DNA from: Bugula neritina
Taxonomy: Eukaryota; Animalia; Bryozoa
Direction: 5' to 3'
Length of the DNA stretch: 64,000 nt
NCBI GenBank assembly: GCA_964035545.1
Contig: OZ037767.1
Span: 29,342,628-29,406,627 of the forward strand
This document shows, piece after piece, positions 7,501-61,879 of this stretch; within the stretch, counting starts at the first letter, position 1; the number at the start of each line of letters is the position of its first letter. The notes below the pieces were generated by a model. The model did not search any database, had not been told where the DNA came from, and saw nothing but the letters and a program-made list of their open reading frames with translations. Both the position numbers and the translations under genes were made by a program.

Positions 7501-10500
7501 GAAAATAGAAATATCATTCCAGATAATTTATATTAGCTATTATAGCTATTATAAGCTATAGCTATTTAGTAATCAATGCAACATCTATGTAAGTATGTTA
7601 CTATATTATGTAATTGCACCAAAATAAAAAATAGCGTCTAACTGGGATGAAACTGTAATCAGTACGGGTATACACTTTCCTAACTCAAGCATTGAAAATT
7701 CTTATGAAGGAAGAAAATGTTCAACTAACAATTTGAGTTAGTATTCAATATTTGCGCTCAATGTAAATGATCTCCATAATGTTGAATAAAATGGTAACTT
7801 TTTATCATTAAATTTTTGTATATTTTTAACAAAATGCTATGTTAGTTGAATGCATTGAAGTACATATTAAAATTCTATTTAGCTACAGTAACAATTCACT
7901 GACATGAGTTTGGTTTGCTTATGGTAATCTAACAACCAAAACCAAAATTATAGCTCGTTCCCCTACCAGATAACTTTTTACTGAATTCATATTAAATAAT
8001 CGTTTCATAGCCAGATATGGTAGCTGTAAAAAGTCAGTTTTTTTCCTTTTTACCATAATTTTTTAAAAGTTAAAAAATGATGCAGCTCAATGCTTTTATG
8101 GCTTTATTGCTAATACTTCTAGTGGAACAATTTGAAGTCCTGTACATAAAATACCATGACACTGTTGAGACATCTTATAGCTCTAAGTTAAAAGCAGAAA
8201 TTTTAATCTACAAATTTATCCATTAGTAGATTCTGTATTATTTATAATTTATATTATAACAATAAATATTTTAGCAACTTTTGAATAAAATATTAAGCAA
8301 GTTAGTTAACTACTTAAAAGTTTGTGACAACTAGTATGTTAAGCTGATGGGAAGAATTAGAGGTTTTCTATTGTCAGCGACTAAAATAGCTGTATTGAAT
8401 TTGAATGAGCACTAGCATCTCAAAGTATGAAAGATGACAAGCAAAAGCTCTACCCTACTTGGGTGAGTACTCCATCACTTTGTTAACCTGATTATACTTT
8501 TACTAAAGAGATTTTCAGTATTAAGGTAATTATTTAAAAGTACTGACGGAAACTATATAACATATTATTAATTAGCAAAATTAAGATTGGTTATAAAAAT
8601 ATAACCACCTTACTCTGGTAAACTTAAAGTAGTCCTAACTTTAACTCAAGTTACTAACTTGGCGATCACTAATTGGGACAAATTATGGCCTGATCATATT
8701 TGGCCCTACTTTTATCTCTAACAACCCATATGGCTGTACTTTAAATCATCGAATAGAGTGTTTGAGACATAAGTACAGGTGTCCAGAAAAGTGGATGATG
8801 ATACATCAAAGAAAAGTTAGAAGGTGTTTCTCATAGCCTACTGACCATGCCGTCCCGAGGAACCTTCCGCTGGGGTGAAATGCAACCCGACTCACTCTAA
8901 ATGGAGAGTGGCCTTCGATATCAGCTATGGGTTCCTCACTCTCCAAGTTCCACAACTTCACCATGCCGCTCTGGTCACATGACGCCATGTTGATAGACTG
9001 TGGAGACTGAGTGAGACTAGCTTGTGGGTGGAAGGTAATACAGGAGGCCTGGCAGAGGTGCCCTAACCAACACAAAGTTACAAGAATTGATTCTCTGTAA
9101 AACCCAGGCCATGATTTAGTCAAAAGACTAAGTCATTATTATTAAAAAATAATTTTATAACTAAAACTGTACTTTTATATATACATGCTGACATGTAGAG
9201 CAGCTACTAAACAGGGCATTTATAACTTGGAACAATGAAAGGAACTTTTAAAAGATGATCGCATGAGGGTTACTTGAGATGAAATACTTGAATGAACAGG
9301 AAATGGTGCCACAATAGTGTTGAACTCTAAACTAATTAAGTGCTGCAAGGAAGAGAGAGTGACGAGTGAAGATTTGTTTTCAGCAACTCTAAGTATGAAA
9401 TAATTAATATCAGTAGAAATTAGCAGCGAAACTTAATCATGCAGATAAAGTACAAAAAAGCTCCTGAGAAAGAAGTGCTATCAAATACAGTTAGAAATGT
9501 TACAACTTTCAATAAAATTTTGAGAAGCTATTTTAAATATACATATTATACTAAGACACGTGCAGGAAAGTGGTAACATGAAAACAGCTGTTATTTTTAT
9601 AGTGTTTAATCTAAATCTTACTGCACATGCAGCACATTCAATTACAAAGAGCAAAGCTTCCAGTGGCCAGTCTTCTAATGATAGAATAAAATATAATAAA
9701 CATAGCAAACATATATATTACATAATGAAGGTGCACAGACTGAATGTAAAGCAGCCAATACAGTTCTCTCTGTTTTAGTAGCTAAAGAGTTAGCTAACAC
9801 AGACTACCATCAACTAGAGAACATTGGATAAGGATGAATATAAAGACTTCCATTGCCGTTTGATGGCTGAGTTATAGGAGTAATAGGAGCTTAAAGTTGA
9901 TCACTTGCTGTGACAAAACTGAAGACGGATGATTTGAAAGGAGTAACAGTTGAATGACCTGCCCATGTATGGTATTAGTTGAGATAATCTCCACAACAAA
10001 ATATGAGACTGAGCGATAAACTCCAAAAGTGAGCAATACACTCAGTACTACCACCAAGCTAAGTACATCCAATGGCCGATAACAGAATTGTTCTATACAT
10101 ACTGCTGAAATGAAAATAAAGGAGATAATCTACAATGTCCAGTATTCCATCTAACTCCAGGGTTAAACACACATTGTAAGTTATTGAAGTGATTAGAAAT
10201 TATCGAGTAGAACTGGTACAATGTGAGTGCATAAAAATTTCAATACATTTAATGAAAATTTAATATTATTTAATGGAAAATTATTACAGAGTTTAATTAA
10301 TTGAGAAATAGATCAAAATTGTGATAAAAAATTTTTCTAAATTTTACATTTTACAATTGAAACTTCCTGTTTAATGAACTATATATTATTTCATTAACTC
10401 AAGAAATGCAAGCTTACCTTTGAGTGTACGTATAAGCATACCTTTGAGTGTACGTATAAGCATACCTTTGAGTGTACGTATAAGCATACCTTTGAGTGTA

Positions 10501-41200: not shown

Positions 41201-44200
41201 GTTTTACAAAGACGCCATATTTAAATTAACTAATAAAACAATAAAATAATAAAATGCATGGCAATTTCTCAGTAACCCTTTCTCTATCAAATGTATTAGT
41301 CACTGCAGTGCGCTGCTTGCCAATCTAAATGTACAAACACACTTGGTGCTGAGCCATAATTTTGGCCATAATTCATATAGAATATATGACTAAAGTCAGT
41401 TTAAATCACTATTATCAAACTTTTTGGCATAAATTTACCTTATCTCATTTTTGATCTGGACAATGGAATCAAAAGCATACATATCCACAGCTATTCATAT
41501 GCTCTCATGTTTGTGTTTTGCTTTCATGTTTGATGTTTTCTTTCCATTTGACACCTTAGCTAGCGTTATGGCTGACCTAACATCAATTATGATGTAAAAC
41601 TATTCTCATGGAGATGTAATAATGGTGTAATTGTTATCATATTAACAGAGATCGCTATTTGATTATCTGGTTGCAATTGTTGTAAGGTGATATACTATTG
41701 TTCCAGTGTCCTGAGTATTTTCGATTGACAGGAGAAGTTAGGTTATATAGAAATGAAATTGGAGAAGATAATTTCTATAGGAGAGTGAACTAAATAGCTT
41801 CAGTGTATCCGTTTATGATAGTTAATATGATAGGCTTGTGTTTAATCGTGTTTTTGTGACAGGAGATAACTTTGCGCTGTTTTGCAGTTAATTTTTCAGT
41901 TTTTTGTGAGAGTATAGAGTTCTAACAGGTGCATGCTTTAGCTGTGACGATGAAGCAACTAATAACCAACAGAATGTCAAAGGATAAAAAAGTTCTGAAA
42001 CTGTTTAAAAGCATGATCTATATTTATCTACTTCTTATTGAATTAGCAACTATATGTCACTTCCAGTGGCTAAATCTGCATTGAGGTCTTTTAGTGGTTG
42101 CCATGCCAACTGGCTGTTCACCAGGATTATAGGGCTACTACACAACACTCCTACTACCCTATAAAGTGTATACTGTTCACAATGGCACATCTTTGAAAGC
42201 CAATATGCGGGTAACTCCCCAACGTTTTTGCTAATTACTTGGCAAGTTGAACGCAATGGTCCTGCAAAGCTATTGCGTAAACTTTACATGCCAAATTGTT
42301 AGCATAAAGAGGATGTTGGAGGCATTTAATAGCACTTGGGGAGAAATATTGCTATGAGACTGATCACATCGCCTGCATCTCAAAGAGATTTACTTAAAAA
42401 TTAATAAGTTATAAATTTTGAGGAGTGACTAATATATCCTAATATCAGGAAATGCCTCGTACTTTTCGGTCAAAAAGTTTAGTTCCTTTGGGTATATCAG
42501 CCCTTGGCTGGGGTTGCGATTGCTACAACTGTAAGCTGGGATTATGGTCATATATGGGGGAAGTGAAACTGCTGAAGGTTGGTAGTGTGATCCATGTTGG
42601 TTGTACGGTTAGTAGCATAGTGAATCGGCTAATGTTATTTGAAAGGTTTTGAAGAAATGTTACATTTTTTCACTAGGGAAGGTTTTATTTTTCTTGCAAC
42701 TAATCAGGAGTTTAGCCTATTTAATTAAATCATAACAATATATCAGTCATTACTCTACAACATGCAAATCCGTTGACACAAATATTTGTAAAATTCAATG
42801 GTAAGAAAAACACATTCCAACACTTTCACTTGCTCCCTCAAACAAGCTGGTGAAACAGGATATTACATGTCAGGCATTTCCCTCCATTTTTATGATAAAA
42901 TTGTCTGTTGACGTAACCAATTGAGTCACAACCCCACTACTATGACTACATTGTTTATATATTGTGTAACAAGAATGATTATTTATGTTTGTAGTCAAAT
43001 GAGCAGAGTACCCTCTCAAGGATTGAGAAGTTGTTCCCACACGATGACTTGGAATTAAATTCTTCAGCTGATAAAAAACCTCGGAGAAGAAGATCAGCAC
43101 CGAGTCAAATTTTGCTTAAAAACTTATACAGACGAAGTGGTACTGGCGATGAGGTGGGCATGAGTAGGGTACCCCCACCTTCTTCAGAGGTTCCAATGAC
43201 AAACCCAGACTTTGTGTCAAGGAAGTTCATCTGTGAGTCGGCGGTGCAGCTGTCAGCTGGAGTTCAAACCCAACAGAGATACATCTTCCTGTTCAATGAT
43301 TTACTATTCATAGCCAAACAGAGGTAAACATAATCTGACATTAAAATTAAATAATCTTGAAACATTGCCGAAGACTTGCACCTCATGATTGGCTTAGGTA
43401 GAATGGATTATCTCTATTCTCATAATTTGTAGTTTATTAAAGGTTATGGTAGAAGCTAATCTCAAACGATTTAATGCCCTAGTTTCCGTTAATACATTTT
43501 TAATGTCCATTGTCAAAATTTAGATCCTCATAAATTGTTATGATGTTATGTCATTAATAGAGTTATCAAATTTATTGTTATTTTATTTCCCTTTATTATG
43601 TGAGCTATTTGATTAGGATAGTTTGTTTATCTAGTGCTATTCCATGTAATGATATATTGTGCAGGTCTTCCACTAGTTATAAATTGAAGAATAAGCTACT
43701 AGTGTCTGAATTGTGGATCACAGACTACATAGCTGGAGTGAGTGAGAGCACAGCTGACCCAACCAAGTCATTTGTAATCGGTTGGCCTACTACCAACTAC
43801 ATTGCTACCTTTTCCACAAAAGAGTTATGTGACAGATGGAAAGACAAATTGAGGCAGTAAGAATTTAGCCATCTTTTCCTAATTTTTTAAAGTTTGTCAA
43901 CAACAGAAGCCTAACATTTCAGGAGTTGCCTGCTCCTAGAATTTGTTAAATTGATACGGTCTCTGTATTCAGTAGATTTGTTTTTATAATAGTTTTGGAT
44001 GAATGCCAAAATACTACCAACTCCATGGAAAAATATATTATGGCATGAGATCAACTTTTGTAACGAGAATATTTTGACTTTATGGCAAGCTGCATAGTGG
44101 GTAAACTAGTTGCTGTTTTCTAACTTATTTTTCATCACAAAAAACAGTTTTCATGTCATTGTTACAGTTAGTTTCTAAATCAGTGAAACTGAAAGAAACG

Positions 44201-47200
44201 ATGCATGGTCAGGTTCTTTTGCATCTCTAATGATGTGTTGCTAATTGCAGGATGTTTTGACACTAGAAAGTTGTGTAGTAATAGCTCTAGATTCTGTTCA
44301 TCATCTCTTTAACAGTCAATGAGTTCAGATCATTAGACAAACGAATTTCTACCATTTGATCACAAATTAATATGCCATTATTGAATGAATCAGGGTATTA
44401 TTTGGAATGCTGAAGCTAATAATGCCTTGCCTAGTTTAAAAATAACATCTTCTTGCATTACAGTTTCAACATTGTTGTTTTCAAAACATAAATCTGCACT
44501 AGAGCAGCAGAAGCATGTATTGCTGATTTAATTTCACTGGTTCTCAAACATTTTCTCTGTAGAAGCCCATTTTGCAATAACTTGTCTTTTGATATAAAAA
44601 ACAATCCAATATTTGAGATGTAAAGGCCATTTGATTTTGTATTTCTGTAGACAAATCAACGAGGAGCAGTCGAAAGATCTCTCTTCAGAAATTTCTGTCA
44701 CAGTAGCTCACAAGAATACATTACAAGAGCACATGTCTGACACTATTTCCATAGAAAGAGATACAGATGCTGAAATGCTACTGGATTTGACGATAAAAAA
44801 GTTTGAGATTCAGGTGAGAAAGAAGCTATAACTGACAGAACTGTGGGGCATGGAAGAAAATTCTAAATTCTAGAAATGTAGAGTCAGTGTCAACATGATT
44901 GGTCAGGTGTAGGGTGTCTGTGGTAAGACTGGGAGTCACTCAGTCATTTTACTGTAATCAGAGTGATAAGAAACTGGGGTTTGGTAGAAGACTGTCTCCC
45001 ATCATACTCATCTTTCATGAGAAATGCCGAACCCCAAGTATTTCTCAACTCAGTAATGTATCATTTTTCACTAATTGCTAGTTTATGATAACTGACCAAG
45101 GCCCTAATTGCTTATATATGCCCCTAAATGTTGATGTTATCTACCTACCTTATAGATCAACTACTACAAAAACCACCTACTATCTCTCCCTTTTAATCAA
45201 CCACTATATCGACTACAAATAACAATCCTAATCATACAGTATTCTTAAAAATGTGTTGCAGGACTGATTTGTTGATAATTCAACTAACTTTTTAGCTAAA
45301 TTTAGAAAAGGAACACGGAAACTTATAGTCCAGAGTCTCTAGTAACTGACATGAAGCTGCTACTATTTATAATGCAAGCAACATGCCAAATGTTTACCAG
45401 TGTATCTAAGCCTGCGATGACAACTGTATACATAATGGCAGTGTCTGCATAATTAAATGTATTTTAAGAAGTTTAGTGTTACAATTAAACTAATTCCTGG
45501 CATGACTTTTTGACTTGAGTTTTTGAAACTAAAATAAAATAGTTTCAAGTGGCTTGGAAATGATCTTTGAATAATTTATTTTATTTATAGAACGCTAAAG
45601 ACACGGAGTATAGGTTGTGGGTGATGTCGCCCAAGGATGAATCTTTCTACCCCTTGTTTGGTAAGCTTTTTGAATATTAGTGATGTATCAGTATCTGCAC
45701 TATGCCATATTTGTTTCCAAGTGTTTTAACAATGCTAGTTGATTACCCAGTGTACTATGGCTAGTTCAAGGTAGAGAATACTACATGTGGTACTAGAAGT
45801 TTTATTTGTAATTATGTAAATTCTCTACCATCATATTGCGTAGCTACGTTGAAGTCAGAATTAGTCACTAATAAATAACAGTAGTCTCCCAGCGGGGAAA
45901 CAAACGTCAAGGGTGGGTGGATGGCTTCTGATTTTGACCTGAGTCTGTTTGAGTCTACTAATATCGAATACAAACACCTGTATAAGGATGTCATGCTACT
46001 AGGCCTGGTTTAGCTTCATAAATTATACTTCATTCAAGTATTAAATCAAATATTTGGCATCAGTTTAGTTTGTTATGCTAATGTAGTCTTTATAATATTC
46101 TACTTTAAAAGACAGACCTACATGCTATGCCAGAAACTAGCTCATATTCTATGGTACAGATTTGTTCCCTCGTTAAAATTGATTCTTGAGGTTTGTTGTT
46201 GGGGCATTCATGGCTATTGTAGTCCATTTAAAATTTAAATAAACTTTTATGCATAATTTTTGCATTAGTTAACCCTCACAGTAATTGTCTTCTCTATAAG
46301 CCTAACACCTGCAGCTTCTATAAGACTAAATGCTATTGACTATTTCCTTATTTATCATAGTCACTGTGAGAAGATCTTACATTATTGAGCCAAGGCTTAT
46401 TGTTTACGCAAACATGTTGTGAAATAAGCTACAATGTATTTCAAAGAAATAATCTGCACAATTAAATTTGTTCAAAGGGACACAATTTTTGAGGCTTGTC
46501 TCTAAGTTTGTTGAAGGAGGTTGAATGAGGATGATAATGGTAAAATGTAGGGTGGAATGTATAAGAGTACGCTTTGCTTGGGGTGCTACACCTATATTAA
46601 CATTGTCTTTTCGTCTGACTGTCTGAGTGTGTTTGATTGTTGTTCGATTAGCTAGCACTTGAACTTTTGCTTATCACTTCTAAACAATCTAGTAAGAGAT
46701 AAAATGAAAGCCGTGATGCTATTATGGAACTCATCAGTTTAAAGATGTTGCACTGAGTTTTGGCAACAACAATTTTGGTAAGAAACTGGGCTATTTTAAA
46801 GTAATGGGCTCATTGAATATGAATGGAACTGGGAGTTATATTGTAGCTATTAAGAATATTACCACACTGGTGCGAAGTCATTGTTAAGATGGCATAATGC
46901 GTCCTTCTGCTGGAGTATCTTTAATGATAGGGTTTAACGGACTGGTGATTATAGCTTGCTGGAGTTAAGCCTCTTGTTCATTCCAATAGAGTAGTGGCTT
47001 CACACACATCTAGCACTTCTCTTAGTCAGGTCTGCTGAGCTTTTTCTGCCTAGTAGTTTGTAGTAGTCTGAGTCTAGCAAAACACTGTCAGGTTTTAAGG
47101 AACGTAAATACAATGTCTCGTAAAACAGGGAGGTTCAGGTTCTCATTAAAATTAAAAAGTAAAAGCTGCACGGATTTATTACATTCTTCAAAAAGTTCAT

Positions 47201-50200
47201 CACCTCTAAACTCTACAAATTATGATTTCTCGTCAATGTTGTCTCAACCTTGTGTCATGGACATTGATATTGGTGAAACTCCATCCAAGTTATTTCGCTC
47301 TACCAAAGAATTGAAACGAGGCAGATCTGTTCCTTTGTCTGGTAAACTTTTTAGCTAATTTACTCATAAGCTATATTCTTATTCTATACTATGCTGTTAG
47401 TTATATAATACTATGTATTATAATAGTATCTTTCACATTAAACTGTAAATTGTAAAGGTTTTTTGATGAGCACTTAGAGAAAGACTATCGGAAAGCCTTG
47501 TACTAGTTTTCAGACATAGTGTACTAGTTTTCAGACATAATTTAGACTTATTCCCTCAGATCAAAGTAACAGTCTAGTAAGTTTTATAATCATAAACATT
47601 GAGAGTACCAGCATGAGTCTTACGATTACCATATTATGGTTACTAAAAGCATTGATTTTGTTGATGAAACTAATAACTAAAAATATTTCTCTAAACTTAA
47701 ACTAGTAGTAATAGCATTTAAATAAAAGGAGGATCTATAGGTACAGGTCAGCTGGTAGCAGTATCAAAATGAATGCACAAATATTATTCATTGCATAATA
47801 GCTGTTTAAAACCATGAATGAATGACTGAATGAGTGATGCAGTCACTAATAGTTAAGATCTGTTTGGTGCACTTGCCAGTTCACTCTCTTACATACGTGA
47901 ACATAAACACTAGTGTGCTTAAGGACAAATATATTGGATCTTATTGTTCAATTCAATGCAGCTATTCAATTGCTCACGAAAAACCTGCATATTTTTGACA
48001 TGATTTTTACTCTGAATAAACCAGCTGTTTACCTTTAATGCAACTTTATCTGTCAACCGGAAAGCAAGTGCTTTGTTTACACTAAACTTAGATATGCTCT
48101 ATGTAACTAGCTCACAGCTTTTTCTAATTTTTAGCTGTATTGTTGTGCAACTAGATCTGTCATGAGTGCAGAGAAGATAAATGTTTTTATGGGCTACTAG
48201 TCTAAGAATTCAGGAGCAAAATATTACTTATCCATTGTCTGGTCAACACACTAGTGCATTTATCAATCTCCCCAGGCTATTACTGCTTATTATCACGTAT
48301 TTTTTTCTTTTGCTTGTGTAGGCTATCTGAATATCGGTGTCACGTTTTCTGTTTGTTCAATAGCGTGCATCTAAAAATATCAAAGTAATGTTTTATTGGC
48401 GGCATCATTGTCAGCAACAGCTGACTTAGTCTCTCCTGATGAATCAACAGACTTGTTATTTTCTGCCACTTGTTTATTGTCATCTGAACTCTCCAAGATT
48501 CTACTTTTGATTTCCTTTTGTCCTGATGTTCTTCATCTCCTTCATCTATCATCTTTGTTAAGCTATTTGATGACTTCCCTCAGTGTTAACCTCCACTAAG
48601 GTTCGATTTTTACCTGAATATAGTTTTATCATATTTTCGTTCTTGTGGGCTGCCATTTCTAGATTTTTTACTTACAGTTGTAAGACGCAGCGTGTATAAG
48701 AAACGACCTTGAACTTGGTTTGCAGTCACATCGCAACCTCTAATCACTCGTAATATCTGGCACAATTGAAAATATGCTCAGCTTAAATTCCGAGTTTAGA
48801 GTATAGTTTTGATTAATGGCTGCATTTGCTTATGCTAAGTTTATCTGTTATATATTGGCTTTGAAAATTAATAAAAGATTTTTTTTCAAATACGTCTGGT
48901 TCAAAGAGAAATTGAGGGAGTAGCTGTTGGCATTCTGCCTTTTTGGTGGCCTATAAACGTCACCAGAGTTTACTAAAATATTAACTCTATATTCCTATGA
49001 TGATATACCCCCTGTTGCAAGAGCATAATAATACAAAGATTAACAAAAATTGGATATGGCAATCCACATATAATTGTAGTGTCAGTGTGCCCTGCGTTAG
49101 AGCAGGAAACCATTGATGGTAACAAATAGACATTAGATTAGTCATAGCACCTTATAGGTTACAGCATCTGTAATTTTCTACACCAGATTAAATGTTAACC
49201 CAGATCGTTCCTCTCTGCTTATCATAATGAAAAATCTTAGCAAGTAAATTTTGTCAAGTCTTCGTAGTCTGAGTATTGTCTTTAACTTAAGCAGACTGTT
49301 TTGGCAATTTGCAGTACTTTGAGCAAGCTGTACATGGGTTACTTCAGGGGCGCCAATACTTTGAATATCGATTATAATGGTCAGACGAACCCACTGAACA
49401 AGCTAATGCTGATATGTTATATAATTATTGGGTAAATGAGGCAGAGAATTTATGAACAATGCCTTGTCCATTTGTTTTCATTATTTTCACAATATTAGTC
49501 TTTTATTGAAGTATTGTTTGTTAAGGCGTATTGAATTATATAATAGTTCTACAATTGATATATTTTTTATTCAATTGATTGCCGCATTGGCAGCTGACTA
49601 CGCGTATAGCATGGCTGCTATTTAGTTATTCCTTAGCTACACAGGTTAGGCATTTGGTGAGAAATAGTCCAAATTGGCTGAAAGCCACTATTCTCTTTTC
49701 AAAGGCTTTCAATTTCTTTGATCTCTTTAACTAAAAGTAGTTTTCGATAAACATTGAGCTGCTTTCATTTGACAAGCCCCAGTATTGATACACTGGCCAA
49801 TACTTTTGCATTAAAATGGATTCGAATTGGGACCCTGACTGGGACTCTGTGCAACTTTCGGACTTGCGACAGAGACGACCGCCTAGGCTTAGAAATCGTA
49901 CTAAATCAGACCCACATCTGCAAGTTCATTTGCCAGAACACTTGCTAGTGACACACAAGCCGAGGTTCGAGTCAACTTTCACGGGAACCGAGTTTCGGAG
50001 GCTACGAGAGAAAGAAGGTAGGCTATGGTTGAGCTTTAGGGTTTACAGAGAACTAATTAGAGAATAGAATTGGAAGTGTGAATCTTATGTATGCTTTTCT
50101 ACTCCAGTTATGAATTTGTATGGTAAAATTTCCCCCTCCATTTTGTTAAGTGATTTCCTTAGTGGTAGGTTGAGTAGTGGTGTTCCAGGTGGTTGTTGGT

Positions 50201-53200
50201 GACTGACCTGCTGATAAATTAATTTGTCATTAATCTCTGGCACAGACCCTTATTTTGTCACAAAGTTTTTGAAAGGTTAAAGGTGGATTTTTTTCGAAAA
50301 CAGAATGTAGTTACGCAATCAACTATCGGAATAGCTTGTTTAAAAAGTTTATTTTCATTGCTCAACTTTTGTTTAAGTTGAGGGCGCAATGTAGGTGTGA
50401 TTTTTTAAATTGGAAAAGCAACCCTTTTGTTAAAATTCAACATTTCTCTGAGAGCCACTGATGTAAGGATATCTTAAAGTTGACTAAAGCTGGGGGAACT
50501 AACCTGGGATACATTCGGCCAATGCTCCAAACATGGCTGCCAACTTGTAAAACAAGAAAAGACTTGCTGACGACTGGCAAACGTTTAAAGATGCCATCCA
50601 CATCGGATTTGATTATTTTTCTGGCTTTCTTATAAGCACATTGTATAAAGTTAAATGGAGTAAGTCTGGCTTAGATTTATAGCTGTCTCAGACAGCATTC
50701 AATCTGACTCTCAAAAGTCTACTGCCCAATCTAGATTACCTTTCATCTAAATTGTTGAAATAATTCAATTACTGTAAATTAGTACTATTTGTTACACGCC
50801 CTTGTCTACTGCAATTTGGTTGAGGGTTGTTTGCTCGTGTCGATTTGGACCACCTACTATCAGTGCCACCATAGGTTGAAAGCTGACCCATAATTATAAT
50901 AGCACGTTGATGCGAGCAACGCTTCGAAACCTACCACTGGTATATTGTGTGCAACCAAGCATTTAGAATGCAAGGTAGGAGCGCAATACCAGTTGCGGTT
51001 GTTGAATACTAATTCATCTTAGAATATCACAGCATTAGCTGTTTGTTGGAGGTAGATGATGGTTTGCTAGATTAAAAAGCCTGTATAATCACTCATGATG
51101 CAGAATAAATCGAGATCAAGCCGAAATCACGTATCGTTGAACTTTGGGCAACACAACAGATCTATCTCTAGCTCCTCTATTAGTAAGAGAAATAGGCACA
51201 AGAGCGAAGGGAGTCTAGGGTGTACTCTGGATGTTAGTTATAAAGACATGAGGCTCAGCGAGTCTCCACATTGTGGGGTATTCAGCCCACCCGTAGTTGG
51301 ACGAAATGGTAAGTGACTTAGTGGGTAAACCTGAATCACCTTATACAGCTTAGGGTTACACACACTTATTAGTCTGATTGCATAACACACTTAGAAAACT
51401 TAATCTTGCAGCAACTTAGAGTGTAATATAACAAATGTTAGAAAATATCATAATTACTGTGAGAAATAGTTTCTGCTTAGGTGTACTACTACTAGTACTA
51501 GTGGCATTAACTTAGTGCAAGTTTAACTTTAACCTAAGAAAGAATTAGATGTCCACATTGACCAGGTCGTGATTAAGATGTAATCAGGGATGTAGTGGTA
51601 CCCATACGGTCCCATACGCCGTATGGCCTAGAAGAAAATGGACTGTTCTAGGCCATACGCCCGTATGGGCATAAAATTTTTGAAAGATGGTTAGTGCACA
51701 GGGTAGTTAGGGGCATCCTCACTGAGAATATCATAAATTTCGCTCACAATCTAGTTTAAGTTCTTGTTATGTTGATGCTATGTGGGTGGCATGCGTGTTG
51801 CCTACTTGTGATTGTTTAGCCTGAGATTACACTATGAATAATAAGAGCTATCAACATTCCGTCTTCTCATCTTTACGTGTTCACTGAAGCGTGAAGTGCT
51901 GTGCATTGGTGATTACTTGGGAAAAATATTTCATTTCAGTGTGTAAATCACTAATTTGTAGAAAATCTATGAAAGCTATTGAAAGGATCAAAAAATTTGC
52001 TATATGCATAAATTTTTCAGGTTTCCGACAGTGTTTGTTCTATTCCAATACCATACTTTCCTGCTGAGATATTTGGCAGATTTTGAAAAATAAACTTTTC
52101 AGATAAAATTGGCCAAAATGGGTAGTTTTTTGTCTATAACTTTGCAAAAAAAAGTATTGAAAACTCGAAAAAGCAGGTGCTCTGAGGAACAGGAAGATCT
52201 AAAACATGGTTTTGAAATTTTTATTCTAGCACAATTATAGGCAGTGACAGCTAGAAGGCTGCCCTTATCTATCTTGTGTGGACTTGTATTTTGTCAGTAA
52301 GCAATGGAATTTAAAAAACCAACATGAAATCCAGAAATAAAATCAAAATGTCTTCAAGAAACAGTACCAGTTGTGTAGGAGAGGTTAACGAAAATTTATC
52401 ACTGAGGTCTACAGGTACTATGTCCACATTTTGCTCAAAAACCTAGCGTTATTGCATGTTAATTATCAATGCAATGAGGTTTTGCAAACTGCATGTACAC
52501 CACCATAAGTAACCTTTCATGTTTGATTGTACTAACCTCTGGCTTTATATTTTTTCATCTTCTAGGTTAACACATATTAAACCTGTCAAATTTGTTCTTT
52601 TGGGGTATGTTTCCTTTATGTGTCTAGTGTAAGTTCAAGGGTTTTATTTTAAAACCAAGTTAACATACTCTTCTTGGGTGTACTTTATCGTGTGTTAGAA
52701 GGTGTGGTGGTATCTCCTTATGGATTAGACAAAGCCTAGGGCCACACTGTGCGTATTTTCGCATGCGAAAATTGAAATCACAAGTAGCAAAGGTGTTCAC
52801 TGTAGCGTCAGTAATGCGTGATAAATAAAGCTTTCATTTTTAAATCGCACTCGCTTTCAATAAAACGAAATTTCCTGGAATGTAGCACTAAAATAAGGAA
52901 ATTGGGGTCGCTGAATAACTACCAGCCAATTAGGTGACGACGACAGAGACGATTCGCACTTGCGTTAAAAATGCTGAGCGACAAGTGCGAATGTTTTTTC
53001 AACGCGCACAGTGGACACCTTTGCTACTTGTGATTTCAATTTTCGCATGCGAAAATACGCACCCTGTGGCCCTAGGCTAATACTCTAATAAACTCCAATT
53101 AGGTTTTTTTTAACCAATTGCTGCTTGCTAATGAGTTATCAATTCAAATAGCTCGTTCTAAATAACCAACACACATTTTCTGATTTGCAATCTGCCACTC

Positions 53201-56200
53201 TTCTGATCTATTATTCTTTTTCTGGGCACGTCAGTCTATTAGTTATTAATAAAATAATCAGGTTGCATTTGGAGAGCACTTGTTACCTGCCTCTATCCTT
53301 CCATCTTTTTGAGATCTTCAGCAATTTTTCTGTACAGTTTGGACTTGGTGCATGTCAGAACAAACCTAACTGCAGTTGAGTAAGACTACATTTAAAATTA
53401 CAGTCAACAATTAGGTATGGGACAATACTGAATATTTATATAGTTTGCAGCAATGCCCAGTCGTCATGTAGCTGGTATGGTATGAAAATAATAGTGAGGT
53501 GTACATTTCAACACAGATTTTTTCAGAAGAATTATAATTCACAATGGCTTTAAATTGCATAAATTTGCATCAGAAGAGCTCTGAGAGCTTTGGCGGCCGG
53601 GGCGCTGCCCCGGACCCCGCCAGGGGGCCTGGGCGGCCCCCTGGACCCCCGGCCTGAGAGTATGGCCTAGAATATTTTTGCCACTACATCCCTGGATGTA
53701 ATTACTAACATGGATGGTACTAAGATCACAATGCATGTAGAAGCACTCCGATTAGGAATATTCTTCAAATCTCTCATCAGGAAATCTAAGTACACCTGTC
53801 AAAGTAACACACTAAATGGGAAGCCATCATAATGTTCATATTTATAATGATTTTTAACTGTCCAAGACTTTAGCCAACACTAACTGGCTTGCAACTGACT
53901 GAGTCTGGTCCTAGAGTTGTCTGAAATTCTGCGATCTATGAACCGTCTGCTAATAAAGTGCTGGTATATCTCTATATGCTAGTAGTATATTTCAGTTTGT
54001 ACTGGCCACCGTATTCTATTATAATATACTTTATTATACAGTTACTTGTAGTACTAACTGTCTTTATTATCTATTTTGTGTGTTTTTAAAATTTGCTTCA
54101 AAGTGATCCAATTATAGGATAAGTTAAAACGTGGTAAGACTTAAAATAGCATTTCCTGGAAAACCTTTTTCACTCCTAAAACTTTGTGGTATAGAAAATT
54201 TTATAAATATATTACATACTAAAACTATAGCCGTGAGCTTAGCATGGGGTTGACTGACATTGTGACTATCAGTAGGTTATGCAATGTTTAGGAATGCTCT
54301 TGCAATATTTAGTAATAACACAAGGATATTGCTGCCGGAGTTGCTGCCAAGCGTTGACTATCACCACATCTCTGCCTCGCCCTCTCTGGCTAACAGATTA
54401 TCTGACTAACTACTCTGAGTTAATCTATTTACCAGTCTTCTGATTCCACATCGCACCCCATCTGTTGGCTTGTCACTTTTTGGCAATAGTTTTATCAAAA
54501 TGTCATGTGGCAAAAAGATTAGTCCTATTTCGACATTAGCTGGCCTGGTTTGGAGGAAAGTTTACATAAATAGTGTTTGATCAGCTAGTCATAAATGTAT
54601 CATGTTATCATCAACTACCTCATCTATTGTTCCATTTACACTAGCTAATTATGTCGAATACTGTTTATTTTCTTGTATTGTGCAAATACTAGTTTGCCAG
54701 AAGACTAGAATTTTATTGAGTGAGATACACATAAAATAATTGTGCTCTTTGATCTATCTGTAACAAAGGTCAATTGCTGTTGCTGACGCACTGAGATGCA
54801 AATAGAAGCAGTAGCATCAAGTAACTGCTAGCTGCCTTCTGAGTATCTCATAAAGACTGAGTGAGATATACGCCAGCTAACTCCTTTAGTAAAAAGAAAT
54901 AGTAGATTCAGTTCATAGTGAGATTCAGTGAGCAATATCTACTGAACTTCTTCATCATTGAACCAAAACCTTCTGACCTCTTATGTAGTCTGATCCATAC
55001 TGATACAGTGCTGGTGGAAATTAAGTTATCACCAGCAGCCGCTGCTGTTTCTAAGTTTGAAGCACCCGAAAATCATAATTAGATGATCCTCTTCAATTGC
55101 ACTGGAGCAGGAAATTGGGTGAAAGCCTGCAGCTAATAATCTGGGATATTCCCACCAACACGGCCAACAAAGAGTGTATACTTGTAAAGTATATGTATGG
55201 TCTTTGTGTTGTAGGGCACGAGCAGCCCTTTGCAATCCAGCTCAGCCACCAGAGAGATGATGAGGACCTAGATTCCAGCCTCAAATGCCAATTCATTTTG
55301 AGAGAAAATAAAAAACAAGTCAAAACAGGTAAGAATAATTATTATTGGGTTTTCTTTTCTTAGTAGCTTACAAAGATGGAGCTTATGCAATATTTTCATT
55401 GTCTGGGTGAAATAACATGAAATGGCTGCATGCATCAAGCGTAATCCCAGTTTCGGCTGCCAAAGTTGATTATTCTCAAAATAACTACAGATAAACGTGT
55501 TGGTAGGCAGCTGTAGTGTCCCATGTGGTGTCACATATATATGACTATAGATCATGTAGCGTCACATGTATGTCACATGTGTGTCACTGTAAAGCACACT
55601 AGCAGCTGTAGCGTCAGTAAACAGAAATCATTGAAGTTTAAAATCTAACATATGGACTTAATTTACAAAAGCATTCTTACGCTATGATTGCATTTATTTG
55701 GATCAAGTTGGCTAGCCTATATTTCTATACCAAGTTAATACAAAACATAAGGCTACATAATTAGCTGCGACTTAATTTAATAAAGTTTCTCTAGTCTGTC
55801 TTATTCAACTGAACAAAGTAGGTTGAGATATGTAAGTGCATAACACTGAATGTATTTACTGGTGTAATACACGACCCATGTGTTGCAAGTACAGTTGAGA
55901 GCTACTAAATTATTATAACTAATCATGTGACAGTGTAGTAGACTAGTAGTATACGGATGCATGATATGCAGAATGATCATATTACAAAAATTATATAATG
56001 TAAGGTATAGTTTTATATTCTGTAATGATAATGTAATACACGTAGTTCATCTCTTGCTATTGCTACTATTATAATGCTATCAAACTCATTAAAAACCAGA
56101 CTAAAAATGTTATCAATTTTTGGGGCAATAAAGCAAAAGAGTGTTTGTTTTACCATAATTTAAGGAGCATAGCATCTCTACCAGAATACTGAATTTTTTA

Positions 56201-59200
56201 AAACATTGAAAAAGCAGCGAGAAGATTGAACTTGGAAAAGTTGATTATGTAGTGAAGTGGCGGAATAGGATGAATTAGAGTATTTTGTGTGGGCCATGTA
56301 TGTGTTGTAACACCATTTATTCACGAATAATGGTTAGATGAGCTTCATTGCCAGCAATTACTCATCGAATCCAAAGATTCATTAAAGGATATATATTCCT
56401 GAGATTACTAAGTTAGCATCCACTGCATTGGTCCGGCTTTGAGGGAAAGACAACCCTGGGTATTGTGACTAATTTAAACAAACTCAGCCAAAACATCTGA
56501 CTCATTGGCACATTTCCAAACAGGTTTTAATTATATATTTTACTTTCAAAGTGCCTAAATTTATTATTTGATAAAAATCAGACTGAAAATGGTTTACTAG
56601 TTTGCTACTAGTCTAAATGAATAATGTGCACGAATTCTAACATAAAGCTTAATTTACAGATTTGAAATGCCTTGCATACTTGTAAGCTTAGAGTTTTGTT
56701 TAGTGTAGAAAGGTGAGGAAACTGTGACTTAGTTATTGTATGTTCAGTTGGAATATGATAATATGCCACAGTTGAGTAAGGGGGTGAAAAAAGAGGGCTT
56801 CAACTATTAGTAAAGTGAAAAAGAGAAACTTTCTCATGAAAGTAGTTATGATATAAATTAATGATAATTTAATTTACTTATTGCAACAATAATTACTAGC
56901 AAAACTACATCTGATTATATCTAATAACAATGCAATGTCTCAATTATTTTCAAATTCTGGCATATTTCATTTAGTGTAATGTAATATGTGCCTGGCAGTT
57001 TTATGTTACCAGCCAATTATTTTTCAAGTTGAGTTGATCAGTGCAAGGCCTGGCAGCCCTACATCTGCATAGCTTACAGTGCAGAGTTATTAAACCTGGG
57101 TTGTGGTTATGTTTTATTATTGATTTTTTTTCAGATCGAAAACCACAAAAGTCAGGAAAAAAGAAGAAGTTGCCCTTATCTAACATTTTCAGAAAAGCAT
57201 CAGGCAAACTGCCTCTTTCTCCCAGATCAACCTCAATATGCGAAGGAAAGCTAGTTGGACACCCACTGGATGAGATATGTGACCCAGATATCCCCACACC
57301 GTTGATGGTAAACTCATTGTATTCTCATTTAAATTGCTGCCTGTGAAAGTTGAGGTATGCTGACAGAAGGTTAGCAAAGGGTGGAGGGTTCAGCTACCTT
57401 TTTTGTGGCGAACATTTGGTTACGTGATTTGCTCATTGTGATCTTAAATGATTAAAAATAGAATGCTGCATGTCACTTGGTTTAGAAATAGGTCAGTGTT
57501 GATTTGATTTAAAAATATGTCAGTTTTTTTATTTGATTTTAAAAATAGGTCAGTTTTTGATGAGATTTAAAAATAAGTCAGTTTGTTATTTGAATGCCTA
57601 GTTTAGTCACTAATTGATTTATTGTCTTATTGATACATTGAACTCTGAACTCCATGATTGTTTTTATTTAGTTGAGTTGCTATCCCTGGGCACTTCAATC
57701 ATTTGCTAATTTATCAGCTAAAACAGTTATCAATTACTTTACAATTAGGTATAAATGTGGTTAAGGTTATAGCAACTCTTAGATACCAATCTTTCGGACA
57801 TCTGCAGAGATTGTCATGTTTTGAGGTGTGATAAATCTTAACTGCACTATTGTTGTGGGTTAGCTAGTAAAGAAAGTGATAAATTGCATATTTGCTTTTC
57901 AGACTTTCAAGACTGTTTTTCCAGGACTAATGGAATCACGTTTCTAGTACACTTTTCATTAATCAACCATTACAATTCCATTTAGTTTCCATTGGTTAAC
58001 TTTCTTGTATTGTTAAGTGTTTGGTGAATACTAATGCTACTGTATAAATTATATATTAATCATTATTGCATATTTTGCTTGAATATTTCAGGAACTGTTG
58101 GAGACTCTCTACAACTGTGGTCCTTTCACAACGGAAATATTTAGGAAACCTGCAAACGCAAAACGATGTCAAGATATGGTCAACCGAATGAACTCGAGTG
58201 AACCAGAAGGCTGGTGCAATGGATGCCATAATGGTATCCTCCTAGCCTCTGTGCTAAAGGTTCGTGAAGATTCCTCTCAGCATATTTTTCTCAAATTATA
58301 ATCATTAGATGCGGATTATATGCCTTTTTGAAGCTTAGTCAAACAGATGACAACTCTGTACTCACACCTATTCTTAGCTGCGTTGCATATTGACGATCGT
58401 CTTTTGGGCGTATTGACTCCCAAAGATATAATTTAGGAAATGCCATTAATTTCGTTTTTCCGAGATTTCTTCAGGTGTGTACCGGATCTAAGCGGAATTA
58501 AATCCTTATAGTAGTTACTAGTGGAGTAAATGTGAATGAAAAGATTATGCAAAGTGCTTTCCTACAGGTTCCAACATTGACGATAAATTAATGCATGAGC
58601 TAATGGCCTTTGGGCCAGTGCATAGTCCTATTGTAATATTTTGCATACATTTCATCGATGCACAATATTGGGAAAAGATTGAATTATATAATGAAGTCAG
58701 TCGATAATTTATTCAATTGTGTAACTCAGAAATTGTTGTCTAGAAATCAATGATGCTATTAATTATCTTACACACATCGCCAACAATAAATTGTGAAAGA
58801 CGCTCAATCAAAATAAATCTGTCTTATTTTTATGGAATATTGAAAAACTTGTCAATAATTTACTACAATCAATTGTTGTATTGAATACTCCTTGCATCAA
58901 CGACTTTTTGCCATGCTCCAATTTTTATGTAATAATCTTTCTGTATTACATGATTAATAATCAATGTTGAGTGCTCCTCATGACCTTAATAGCCAGAAAT
59001 GTTCAGTTGTTTGTTGCGGAGGGGGTCTTTTGACCCTTGGCATTTTAAATGAAGAATGTGGCGGGCGCCAACATGCTATTAGAAGTCAAATTATAAAAGA
59101 TTACTCATAAATTTACATACAATGGCTAAAGTTCGGAAGCTGGAGTTTCATTTGCATTATATTAAAAGTGCAAATTTTCACCTATTTTCGTGGTAATGAG

Positions 59201-61879
59201 TTGATAGAGTTATAATTTTGAGTTCATTTGTAGACATATTTGAGAGAGTTACCAGGAAAGCTATGTTGCTCTGAGTACTACGGTCTGTGGTCAGATGCCA
59301 TTTATCTTTCAAATCATGAAGACAGAAAAAGCAGCATCACCAAGTGAGTTTAGCACCATGACTTTCACATATTACAGTTTTTATACTTAGAATGTTTAGC
59401 CTCCTCCATGACTCACAAAGTAGTACTAACATTTTAATAAATATTCAAGGAATGGATTTATATTTTATAGTTGACAGCTGAAAATTTATGTTGATAGGTT
59501 TCATTTAACTGGGCTTCACTTTTTGGCCAGTAAACGAAGCATTGTCCCATAACTGCAAATATTAGTCCCTCCATTGACGCAAATCAAAACACAATTTGTT
59601 TTGCAATCACCTATACATGACATTTTATTAATACCTCTACAAAGTCAACTATTTGGTGCCATCATTTTAAAATTTTTCCTTATGATTGATAGATGTCAAG
59701 CTAATAATATATATGAAAGCAATTCGCCATACCATACTGTAGATATTTTAATTTCAATTCGCTTCTGGAATTTTTACAGAATTGTGGAAACTCTACCGAG
59801 AGGAAATCAGCTAGTGCTGCGACACATCATCTGTATACTCCATTACATACAAGACAACTCTGAATACAACTACATGACATCGTCCAACCTCGCAGTGTGC
59901 CTTGGTCCTAGTCTTCTAGCCAATGAATCATTGGAAAAGTCGGAGCAAGAAGCTTCCTTAAAGACAGTACCACAGATTGTACAGTATCTAATAGACAACT
60001 GTCAATCGGTGTTTGGCAAAGACATATTAGACACTTTTGGTCATCTTCCAATAGAACCAGTTGACAGTGACACAGAGGAGGTTTCTGCTAACAGCAGACT
60101 ACTCACCATATACAATGACTCACTCGAGTCTCTCTCGGACACTGAAGGCGAGTCCAGAAAAGCAGGCACTCTTACGCAGATGAGTCCTTCATCCTGTTCG
60201 CGCGACTCTGGTCTAATACTCAGTGATCCCCACGAAGGAGAGCATTCGGATGAGCACTCACTTCGACAAGAGATAATCAAATCCAAGTCTTGCGACTCCA
60301 TCAGTCAGCCGGAGCAGAGAAGCATAGGTGTCAGAATGGCACCACTTCAGACACAAGTGTCGAGTGACTCACTAGATTGTGATGATGAGTTCGGAGAACT
60401 CGGTAATGACTGTACCTTCTTGTTGACCAAGTCTAAAAGTGGAGGGCATTTGTGTTTTGACCGAAATGTTGAAAAGTCCTCTGTCAGGATACCCAGTGAA
60501 AGACATGCTAATTCCTATCCTATAAATTCAACCTTTAATAAGTTGCAAGAAGTGGAGTATTCAAGTAGCGACTCTGAAGACAAACCGTCTGCAAGGTTAG
60601 TGTCAAGTTAGACTTGAACTCATTTATAGAAGTTAGCAAATTCTTAGTACTGAAACAATTATTTCGGTTAAGCAGCTAAGATTATGTTTAAAATGAAATT
60701 TGGTCGTTAAAATTTTTTCTACATTATAAATGCATTCAAAGTACTTTTACCTTACTTACAAAACAGTGAGTTGAAGTTGTCACATCTTTGCATGATTTAT
60801 GGAGTCATTGTTGATTGATGCCTATATTCATGTTTATTCACAACAATTATTTGAGTTTGTTTATGAAAATACTGGTTATATGTTTTAGCAATGAGAAGAC
60901 GCAGTGGTTGAATACAGAGTTACAAAAGTCAAGTACAAATTCTTCCTTGCAACAAGGCTCAAGTTCGAGTGACGATATTCACGGACAAGAGTTTGTTACC
61001 CACAGACACATCAACTCACCAAAATTCTTCGAGTCAGAAAATGGTCACCATCCTCGAGATTTTCTTCAACAGTTCACCAACAAGATTGAGAGTGAAGAAT
61101 TGCAAAAGAAAAAGTTGCGAGAGTTGGTCAGACAAAAAACAGAACCGCTACTAAATACGGACACAGACGATGACGATGTCTTGCGATCTGCTAAATCATC
61201 CTCAACATCTAAAAACTTTTCAGGACGCCATCTTAAACACAGTAGCAGCACTAGTAAGGCGTCGCCGAAGATAATGCGAACCAACACTTACGGCGGCCGA
61301 GGTGATCGCCGCCAGCGAGCTCCAGATGTCAGCATGCTTCCAAATATGGCCGAGACGAAACCCATAATGCCTCAGCAGTATAGACCAAATCGTCCGCCAC
61401 CATATCGCGAGGCCTTGGAAAGGAAAGAGAAAATGAAATGCAATGTGTCTGAGATGGAAAAGATAAAGCAGACAGTCAACAGTGCAAGGGCGAAGCAAAT
61501 GTATGCCCAGTCAGTGCATCTATTTGAGCAGGGGGCTAAAGCCTCCACTACTAGTTCCAGTGCCTCTCATGCAGCTGATGTTACAGACTCCAAGCTATCC
61601 CAAGCAAGTCTGTACAATAACAATAACACTATTGGAGTTGTCAACACACAAGACACTAAATTTATCTTCAAGCGTTCAGCGAAACCAGTGAATGTCGATT
61701 CAACCAGCCGAACAATATTCTATCAGCCAAACAGTTCACACCGAATAGCAGGGCATCCCAAAAGTTCCGGCAACTTATTCTACAGACCTACACAACCTCC
61801 ACCATACAAGGAAGCCGTGAAAATTAGGAATAACAAACCAGATCTGATCGATCGCCTAGGTGGAGAATCGCTTGTATAG
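23195..61879 (+). CDS. ARHGAP20: ARHGAP20/TAGAP-family Rho GTPase-activating protein (PH-RA-RhoGAP), with many predicted alternative first exons
   Basis: Constant exons, all phase-consistent: 42995-43323, 43665-43856 (PH: QRYIFLFNDLLFIAK..KSFVIGWPTTNYIATFS..RW), 44651-44813, 45591-45660 (RA: YRLWV..YPLFG), 55215-55328 (HEQPFAI..KCQFIL), 57135-57307, 58092-58259 (GPFTTEIFRK arginine finger; LASVLK), 59234-59343 (YLRELP), 59780-60595 (LPRGN..NYMTSSNLAVCLGPSLL), 60889-61879 (ends ESLV*). Confidence 0.9.
26376..26719. mobile_element. PIF/Harbinger-like MITE, copy 1
   Basis: ~70-bp TIRs beginning GCCTAGGGCCACAC; TTA on both flanks (26373-75, 26720-22); near-identical inverted copy at 52734-53077. 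Confidence 0.9.
28619..29690 (+). CDS. RhoGAP variable N-terminus A2, two exons (28619-28679 and 28801-29690), ~317 aa, Ser/Lys-rich, ends phase 0
   Basis: caaaATG MSELITEEEMVNKIKFPTGR-G|GTAAGT (phase 1); TTGCAG| acceptor in frame with the 285-aa ORF 28884..29741; GAG|GTGAGT donor at 29690. Confidence 0.8.
30749..30823 (+). CDS. RhoGAP variable first exon A3 (MKQDHRPNNLLRTYRKWKSAGAVHS), phase 0
   Basis: aacATG, 25 open codons, TCG|GTAAGG donor. Confidence 0.6.
31358..31618 (+). CDS. RhoGAP variable first exon A4 (MSQTPKTPRNKK..SYSPLPG), phase 0
   Basis: ataATG, 87 codons with protein-like composition, GGG|GTGAGT donor. Confidence 0.75.
33998..34212. repeat. Degenerate (GTGTA)n pentanucleotide microsatellite
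   Basis: Directly visible; explains ORF 33999..34274. Confidence 0.9.
35582..35662 (+). CDS. RhoGAP internal symmetric exon (VQRLELSDVAAGISKLSHAESDEQLNQ), phase 0-0
   Basis: T-rich tract + GACAG| acceptor, 81 nt open, CAG|GTGGGT donor; GC-richer than the flanks. Confidence 0.7.
37423..37506 (+). CDS. RhoGAP variable first exon A5 (MMSDKPAAAARFAANRQVSDSALLDHKK), phase 0
   Basis: ATGATG start, 28 open codons, AAG|GTAAGA donor. Confidence 0.7.
39775..39852 (+). CDS. RhoGAP variable first exon A6 (MEDNMSASKPNKPPRLHGRSVSLVEK), phase 0
   Basis: 26 codons then AAG|GTAAGA donor. Confidence 0.75.
47113..47341 (+). CDS. RhoGAP internal variable first exon B1 (MSRKTGRFRF..RGRSVPLS-G), phase 1
   Basis: acaATG, 76 codons + G|GTAAAC; phase matches the acceptor at 55215. 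Confidence 0.7.
49816..50017 (+). CDS. RhoGAP internal variable first exon B2 (MDSNWDPDWD..RRLREKE-G), phase 1
   Basis: aaaATGG, 67 codons + G|GTAGGC. Confidence 0.7.
51095..51308 (+). CDS. RhoGAP internal variable first exon B3 (MMQNKSRSSR..PPVVGRN-G), phase 1
   Basis: 71 codons + G|GTAAGT. Confidence 0.7.
51585..53694. mobile_element. Non-autonomous hAT-type DNA transposon, 2.1 kb, carrying a nested MITE
   Basis: Perfect 14-bp TIRs CAGGGATGTAGTGG / CCACTACATCCCTG; perfect 8-bp TSD GATGTAAT (51577-84, 53695-702); subterminal CCATACG/CGTATGG repeats; GC-rich patch at 53592-53654. Confidence 0.93.
52734..53077. mobile_element. PIF/Harbinger-like MITE, copy 2 (inverted relative to copy 1)
   Basis: Same ~70-bp TIRs; interior is the reverse complement of 26376-26719 with scattered substitutions; flanks AAA/TAA. 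Confidence 0.9.
57483..57592. repeat. ~28-30-bp degenerate tandem repeat x4
   Basis: Unit approximately TTTAAAAATAGGTCAGTTTTTGATTTGAT. Confidence 0.8.

Follow-up and report, generated by a model that had tools for sequence, protein, structure and literature searches.

Probable alternative first coding exons within an RA-domain intron of an ARHGAP20-family RhoGAP gene in the bryozoan Bugula neritina

Vertebrate ARHGAP20 carries an ARHGAP20-type PH domain (RHG20_PH), an RA domain, and a RhoGAP domain, in that order. Passages of two papers (PMC3507925 and PMC13419509, citing Yamada 2005 and Kurooka 2011) describe it as a Rap1 effector that inhibits RhoA, and the references cited there establish, for the mammalian protein only, that binding of Rap1-GTP to RA stimulates GAP activity towards RhoA. 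Its relative TAGAP is a RhoGAP of the same family that is produced from an internal start and contains neither a PH nor a working RA domain. Here, we describe a gene with the domain order of ARHGAP20 in a 64,000-nucleotide stretch of the Bugula neritina genome (the window; assembly GCA_964035545.1, contig OZ037767.1, positions 29,342,628 to 29,406,627, forward strand; coordinates below are window positions). The gene shares with vertebrate ARHGAP20 a phase-1 intron at YPL(I/F)G^HE (the caret marks the splice cut) and equal phases of the neighbouring exons. In the window, this intron holds three open reading frames (ORFs; E1, E2, and E3), each opening with an ATG and closing at a phase-1 donor. 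At least E2 and E3 are very probably genuine alternative first coding exons, and E1 is probably in use as well.

A sequence-only reading of the window had proposed that a 9.5-kb phase-1 intron splitting YPLFG^HEQPF contains three ATG-started ORFs of 67–76 codons with phase-1 donors at 47341, 50017, and 51308, and that these serve as first exons for GAP isoforms lacking the PH and RA domains. The intron, its phase, and the three ORFs are present in the sequence as described, with the following layout:

45591..45660, plus strand: constitutive RA-domain exon, NAKDTEYRLWVMSPKDESFYPLF-G, phase 0 to 1, donor G^GTAAGC; used by the long PH-RA-GAP isoforms only
45661..55214, plus strand: host intron, 9,554 nt, phase 1, splitting YPLFG^HEQPF and containing E1, E2, and E3
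47113..47341, plus strand: E1 coding part, ATG at 47113, 76 codons + 1 nt, donor CTG^GTAAAC
49816..50017, plus strand: E2 coding part, ATG at 49816, 67 codons + 1 nt, donor AAG^GTAGGC
50952..51094, plus strand: E3 5′ untranslated part, minimum extent, from contig starts at 50952, 50958, and 50982 (runs X3, X4, and X6)
51095..51308, plus strand: E3 coding part, ATG at 51095, 71 codons + 1 nt, donor ATG^GTAAGT
55215..55328, plus strand: common acceptor exon, G-HEQPFAIQLSHQRDDEDLDSSLKCQFILRENKKQVKT-, phase 1 to 1, C-terminal RA remnant, common to all isoforms
57135..57307, plus strand: next constitutive exon, 173 nt, phase 1 to 0, basic cluster KKKK and start of RhoGAP

The exon preceding the intron ends in TAC CCC TTG TTT G^GTAAGC (YPLFG, phase 1) and aligns to '..DYQLWV.SGK..APYPLIG' of vertebrate ARHGAP20, inside the Pfam RA match; its phases are those of a 67-nt exon in a fish ARHGAP20-like gene and a 64-nt exon in shark TAGAPb, and its length is near theirs. 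The acceptor at 55215 (...TTGTAG^GG CAC GAG CAG) reads G^HEQPF, and the exon that it opens is homologous to a 156-nt and a 144-nt exon in the same two genes, both phase 1 to 1. E1, E2, and E3 each end in the first base of a glycine codon followed by GT, and the frame they set continues through 57135–57307, which matches exon 5 of whale-shark TAGAPb in length (173 nt) and phases, into the RhoGAP domain. Further upstream lies another cluster of first exons, which the earlier reading had placed in phase 0; by sequence, phase 0 holds for both of its donors (29690 and 31618) and for its acceptor, at 42995 (TTTGTAG^TCA AAT GAG).

ORFs of this kind can arise by chance. In 1,000 first-order Markov sequences with the length and composition of the intron, ORFs that open with ATG, span 60 codons or more, and end at a comparable phase-1 donor occurred at a mean of 0.29 per simulated intron, or one per about four introns of this size, and a Pfam scan of E1–E3 returned no family, both of which would suit chance ORFs or transposon remnants without function. 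Three or more such ORFs, however, have a probability of only 0.002, no such combination of ORF and donor is present on the other strand of the real intron, and each of the three is single copy in the 216-Mb genome; synonymous-biased substitutions, conservation in a distant relative, and splicing of two of the exons (all described below) also run counter to this explanation, which we regard as exceedingly improbable. Because E1–E3 are single copy and match no Pfam family, they are not transposon remnants, in keeping with the earlier proposal.

Contigs of four RNA-like runs from three studies were aligned on 49400–55399, which covers E2, E3, and the acceptor exon (E1 and 45660 lie outside). An X1 contig joins the 3′ end of E2 to the acceptor exon, skipping 5,197 nt, and one contig each of X3 and X6 covers E3 from ~50955 and resumes in the same exon after a skip of 3,906 nt; in an X4 contig, E3 is present and ends at its donor. 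The cuts were reported as 50019 to 55217 and 51310 to 55217. The skipped lengths are those of the canonical junctions 50017^55215 and 51308^55215, and the two-base offset is explained by the G that follows the donor and the GG at the start of the acceptor exon; cut canonically, the skipped segments run from GT to AG. Given that no second genomic copy of the exons exists, the joined E2 and E3 forms are best read as spliced RNA and not as a retrocopy contained in the assembly. Of the three junctions to 55215 expected from the sequence, those from 50017 and 51308 are seen in the RNA-like contigs, and the donor of E1 at 47341 falls outside the aligned stretch. Word searches with the E1, E2, and E3 peptides, limited to products of up to 1.75 times the query length, gave no spliced product, returning the unspliced read-throughs P0001 and P0003 and the distant homologue P0002 only.

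All three ORFs evolve as coding sequence. Word searches with the exon peptides located contigs of a sister lineage, among them a 9.4 kb genomic contig (L004) that is collinear with 46340–57838 and 90–92% identical to it; the introns of this lineage differ from the window by 8–10%. Each of E1, E2, and E3 has eight substitutions relative to L004 (24 in total), of which 20 are synonymous and 4 non-synonymous, and 18 fall in third positions (binomial p = 3.6e-5). E1 shows six synonymous and two non-synonymous changes, E2 eight synonymous (all in third positions) and no non-synonymous change, and E3 again six and two; none of the three has an indel (E1 over 229 nt), and each keeps its donor. The 11 control ATG ORFs of the same intron have 25 synonymous to 40 non-synonymous changes, and most of these ORFs have indels (Fisher p = 2.4e-4). 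The constraint begins at the ATGs and ends at the donors, and indels are present in both flanks of E1. Purifying selection is supported by these patterns for each of the three ORFs.

The RNA-like runs and the Logan contigs of the locus (L004, L005, and L007) all differ by 4–10% from the reference, and the constitutive exon 55215–55328 shows five amino-acid changes between the sister lineage and the reference. Runs and contigs alike would thus derive from a sister lineage or a cryptic species, not from the sequenced individual.

Conservation extends much deeper. A search with E2 found P0002 (45% identity) on a 14-kb metagenome contig, L006, which is the orthologous locus of a far more distant relative; its constitutive exons are 50–81% identical to those of the window at the protein level (81% for the acceptor exon 55215–55328), and the introns are unalignable. 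The homologous intron in L006 measures 6.2 kb, and between its YPLFG^ and ^HEQPF exons the homologues of all three ORFs follow one another as in the window, each opening with an ATG and closing at a phase-1 donor:

L006 2001–2151: E1 homologue, ATG, donor G^GTAAGG, phase 1
L006 4070–4274: E2 homologue, ATG, donor G^GTAAGT, phase 1, 45% identical
L006 5069–5234: E3 homologue, ATG, donor G^GTGAGT, phase 1

Comparison of the two introns by tblastx yielded the E1, E2, and E3 segments only, in sense frames; E1 is therefore supported by conservation as strongly as E2 and E3, and the count of three given by the sequence-only reading is complete. With blastn, the matches between the window and L006 are confined to the acceptor exon and to short stretches of E1 and E2. 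The conserved parts are short motifs, namely MSR..RFRF.LK..SKSC.D(L/I)L.SS at the N-terminus of E1, MDSNWDPDWD and RPPRLRNRT(K/R)S(D/E)P in E2, and LGCTLD(V/I).Y....SES..C...SP in E3. A local search of ~240 retrieved ARHGAP20 and TAGAP proteins revealed no similar N-termini outside the two lineages.

The sequence 5′ of the ATGs bears on whether these are first or internal exons. Upstream of the ATG, an in-frame stop lies at a distance of 9 codons in E2 (TGA) and 2 codons in E3, and neither the window nor the sister lineage has a phase-compatible acceptor in the interval; E1 in the sister lineage has a stop 4 codons 5′ of its ATG and a frame-shifting 1-nt deletion 10 nt 5′ of it. Coding therefore starts at the ATGs, and the exons do not serve as in-frame cassettes (for E1, as judged in the sister lineage). 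In three runs, which belong to two studies, the E3 contigs begin 113–143 nt 5′ of the ATG at ragged positions (50952, 50958, and 50982), with no unaligned or foreign letters and no upstream joint, and no joint into the 5′ side of E2 or E3 is reported within the aligned 49400–55399. Each ORF has its own start codon and shares the one acceptor, as alternative first exons do, with junctions for E2 and E3 and conservation for E1. We infer that E1, E2, and E3 have separate promoters.

A number of points weigh against this account. The runs are only guessed to be RNA, and the data are contigs, not reads, from the sister lineage and so 4–10% diverged from the reference. The short side of the junctions comprises 24 letters, in one contig per run. 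Such contigs are uninformative on transcription start sites, strand, and abundance, and the evidence they provide consists of junctions, with no full-length isoform seen among them. Unspliced genomic-like contigs of the locus (L004, L005, and L007) also occur in sibling run accessions, apparently of one series. The X1 contig on E2 reaches at least 880 nt further upstream, and because this contig and the unspliced ones leave the 5′ limit of E2 unfixed, an upstream non-coding leader is possible for E1 and E2. E1–E3 might then be alternative second exons, served by one or more non-coding leaders in the intron or upstream of it, and not mark three promoters: contigs cannot show starts, and 880 nt would make a long 5′ untranslated region for a first exon. 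The ragged, joint-free beginnings of the E3 contigs and the absence of reported joints into the 5′ sides of the exons in the aligned stretch argue against such leaders, and we consider them distinctly unlikely. The reference also keeps 29 codons open 5′ of the E1 ATG, with four phase-compatible AGs, as might be expected if E1–E3 were internal cassette or poison exons spliced in after 45660 in long transcripts. This we judge to be very improbable, since the stops without compatible acceptors recur in two lineages (for E1, the stop is in the sister lineage), the coding constraint starts at the ATGs, and no upstream joint onto E2 or E3 is listed in the aligned stretch (45660 itself lies outside).

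The remaining points concern E1, which has no transcript evidence, as it lies outside the aligned stretch, and whose sole database product is the unspliced read-through P0001. Its donor is the weakest of the three (6/9 consensus positions by hand count), and its selection signal is modest when taken alone (6:2; estimated binomial p ~0.04 when the control ORFs supply the expected synonymous share). Only E2 and E3 might be used, and E1, though conserved as an ORF, might seldom if ever be joined to 55215, for example because it is decaying or serves a tissue or stage outside those sampled. However, E1 has remained free of indels between flanks that have them, and its homologue in L006 keeps the ATG, about the first 25 residues, and the phase-1 donor G^GTAAGG within an otherwise unalignable intron, so we find this restriction to two exons unlikely. 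Overall, the junctions of E2 and E3, together with selection and deep conservation for all three, favour the reading of the ORFs as real alternative first exons.

Just upstream of the common acceptor, both lineages have an in-frame ATG, at 55193–55214 in the window (MYGLCVVG^HEQPF) and at 6590–6620 in L006 (MSSCYICVFVG^HEQPF). Unspliced sequence lies over or beside the acceptor at 55215 in an X1 contig (54970–55240) and in X6 contigs (55005–55210). This could be a fourth start, formed by exon extension, or simply pre-mRNA or DNA.

The host gene is a multi-exon gene on the plus strand that extends from ~28 kb to 62 kb of the window, which is AT-rich animal DNA (GC 29–42%); its stop codon lies near 61879. 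Its domains were identified by searches run exon by exon, not on joined isoform models. The ARHGAP20-type PH domain (Pfam PF22286, RHG20_PH) is matched above the curated cut-off on exons 42995–43324 (E = 1.8e-9) and 43561–43857 (E = 6.7e-17), and RhoGAP (Pfam PF00620) on exons 58083–58298 and 59553–60608. Among solved structures, the GAP exons score best against the GAP domain of ARHGAP20, 3MSX_B (E = 1.9e-13, compared with ~5e-6 for other RhoGAPs), with which the arginine-finger IFR motif aligns. Between PH and GAP lie three exons (one ending at ~44813, then 45591–45660 and 55215–55328) that are collinear with the Pfam RA domain of vertebrate ARHGAP20, giving the order PH, RA, RhoGAP. Protein identity to the vertebrate P0096 is 52% over 45591–45659 and 43% over 55217–55327, with equal intron positions, and YPLFG^HEQPF of the window corresponds to YPLIG^HEYPY (cut between G259 and H260) of P0096, within its RA match at 197–277. 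The exon-by-exon scan did not detect Pfam RA on the single short window exons; the collinear alignment and the shared intron positions nonetheless identify this region as the RA domain of an ARHGAP20/RA-RhoGAP family member. The isoforms starting at E1–E3 would have no PH domain, lose the N-terminal two thirds of RA, and keep RhoGAP in frame, which supports the sequence-only reading on this point.

A HMMER search with a 90-residue GAP piece from the window retrieved TAGAP and ARHGAP20 proteins of vertebrates, recognised as such from their source names. In a GAP-domain tree built on only these 90 window residues (the L006 row opened with one stop symbol from the flanking intron), vertebrate ARHGAP20 and TAGAP form a clade (99/96) that includes a TAGAP clade (98/94), and the window gene falls outside both, as do L006, amphioxus, starfish, and arthropods. 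From this placement, the window gene is therefore co-orthologous to ARHGAP20 and TAGAP, as had been suspected. We take it to be the one invertebrate pro-orthologue of the two vertebrate genes.

The further suggestion that vertebrate paralogues may have partitioned the two architectures of this gene does not, for this particular split, fit the exon structures. Four vertebrate genes were threaded exactly onto DNA (L008–L011):

Fish ARHGAP20-like, RA-region exons: 85 nt (ends ..GNCAY, phase 0); 78 nt (0 to 0); 67 nt (0 to 1, YPLIG); 156 nt (1 to 1, HEFLY); 191 nt (1 to 0); 162 nt
Whale-shark TAGAPb exons: 27 nt (ATG, MKVLSNSGL); 78 nt (0 to 0); 64 nt (0 to 1, ends SLIG); 144 nt (1 to 1, NERPF); 173 nt (1 to 0); 162 nt
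Snake TAGAP exons: 27 nt; 54 nt; 67 nt (0 to 1); 170 nt (1 to 0); the 1-to-1 exon is missing
Sardine TAGAPb exons: 27 nt; 54 nt; 70 nt (0 to 1); 149 nt (1 to 0); the 1-to-1 exon is missing

The homologous intron is the third coding intron of TAGAP, not the first, and the TAGAP start lies two coding exons upstream, with coding exons 1–3 homologous to the RA exons that precede this intron. Likewise, shark TAGAPb 11–132 aligns with shark ARHGAP20 211–345, from early in the RA match (196–273) onward (BLASTP E = 2e-13). The TAGAP start, MKV(L/I)S, is an internal methionine of the PH-RA junction exon: long models of carp tagapb still have RHG20_PH, with MKVLNGNTT internal, and isoform X2 of crucian carp tagapb starts at this internal MKVLNGNTT. 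The TAGAP-type N-terminus, MKV(L/I)S..K(T/S)L.., has no similarity to E1–E3. Equating the '..CQLI(D/E)' segment of TAGAP with the CQFIL strand of the acceptor exon is likewise rejected, as threading and alignment put this segment in the exon before the intron.

TAGAP thus resembles the short isoforms of the window gene in being an ARHGAP20-family RhoGAP that has neither PH nor a working RA domain and is made from an internal start, and it retains the homologous phase-1 intron. It differs in that it starts two exons earlier, its exons 1–3 being relics of RA strands, and in that bony-vertebrate TAGAP has lost the phase 1-to-1 acceptor exon, which begins the common part of every E1–E3 isoform and is kept by sharks. 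Judging from these positions, a PH-less form made from an internal start is a recurring feature of the family, and the vertebrate case is an independent event at a different position. The predicted N-truncated vertebrate isoforms that came up in the comparison with ARHGAP20 start elsewhere (inside RA in Geotrypetes X2 and inside PH in Hoplias X2), and in the one fish ARHGAP20-like gene threaded, the YPLIG^HE intron is 152 nt long, with no room for first exons.

The closest likeness in exon arrangement is found in the phase-0 cluster further upstream in this same gene and in the many N-terminal RefSeq isoforms of its amphioxus and starfish orthologues, in which mutually exclusive ATG first exons are joined to one acceptor with matched donor phase, as in E1–E3. 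The E1–E3 cluster differs from those arrays in that it sits inside a domain, so that its use removes domains and does not only change a disordered N-terminus. Among the listed RefSeq isoforms of amphioxus and starfish, alternative N-termini occur only upstream of PH, with none starting in this intron.

Rabbit and ruminant genomes contain many ARHGAP20-like copies (among them P0004, P0005, P0006, P0008, and P0120), some with several GAP-like stretches (nine in P0004). In some of these models, the N-terminus falls at or close to the YPLIG^HE junction, as in P0120 of Bos indicus, in which 45 unique residues are followed by G^HEHPYGIKMS.

The intron of the window gene also contains a 2.1 kb insertion (51583–53694) that is missing from the sister-lineage contig L004. 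It represents a ~1.77-kb interspersed repeat with at least 35 near-full genomic copies at 82–96% identity, itself broken by a 346-bp element with 71-nt inverted ends (52733–52803 and 53008–53078), and contig depth over it is very high in the RNA-like runs. In a neighbouring PRPF4-like gene, the ORF list shows a six-fold in-frame tandem repeat (..LIRTLKGM..) at 10386–10703 on the minus strand.

In the architecture that we propose, three separate protein-coding first exons, each with its own start codon and presumably its own promoter, would be spliced through their phase-1 G^GT donors to the common acceptor at 55215, E1 probably in the same manner as E2 and E3. Each product would open with a distinct N-terminal peptide of 67–76 residues and continue through the final third of RA and a basic linker into the intact RhoGAP domain and a long C-terminal tail; PH and the first two thirds of RA (~62 of roughly 100 RA-aligned residues) would be missing. 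From the behaviour of the vertebrate RA-RhoGAP and the domains lost, we infer that the short isoforms would be independent of Rap and lipids, that is, not switchable by Rap1 binding or by lipid binding of PH; the short motifs conserved within the exon-specific peptides may provide regulation or targeting in their place. RNRT(K/R)S(D/E)P in E2 and RGRSVP in E1 may be basophilic-kinase or 14-3-3-type RxxSxP sites, similar to RRRSAPS in the long form.

It is common for alternative promoters and first exons to alter or remove N-terminal domains, and for that reason a specialist would not be surprised by the gene structure as such. More tentatively, and as a possibility that we would not yet favour, PH-less, Rap-uncoupled GAPs of the ARHGAP20 family may have been invented at least twice, once from the vertebrate PH-RA junction exon (later TAGAP) and once as a conserved three-exon promoter cluster within the intron that splits RA in this invertebrate lineage, with the three N-terminal peptides acting as distinct targeting or regulatory modules. 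For TAGAP, the exon comparison corrects the view of its origin, pointing to a truncated ARHGAP20 paralogue whose N-terminus is an RA relic and not to a descendant of the intronic cluster. In the bryozoan, one gene would give rise to a Rap- and lipid-regulated RhoGAP and to three domain-stripped versions with N-termini of their own, maintained under selection across a deep split, and these short isoforms would be ready-made constructs for asking what PH and RA contribute to the function of ARHGAP20-family proteins.

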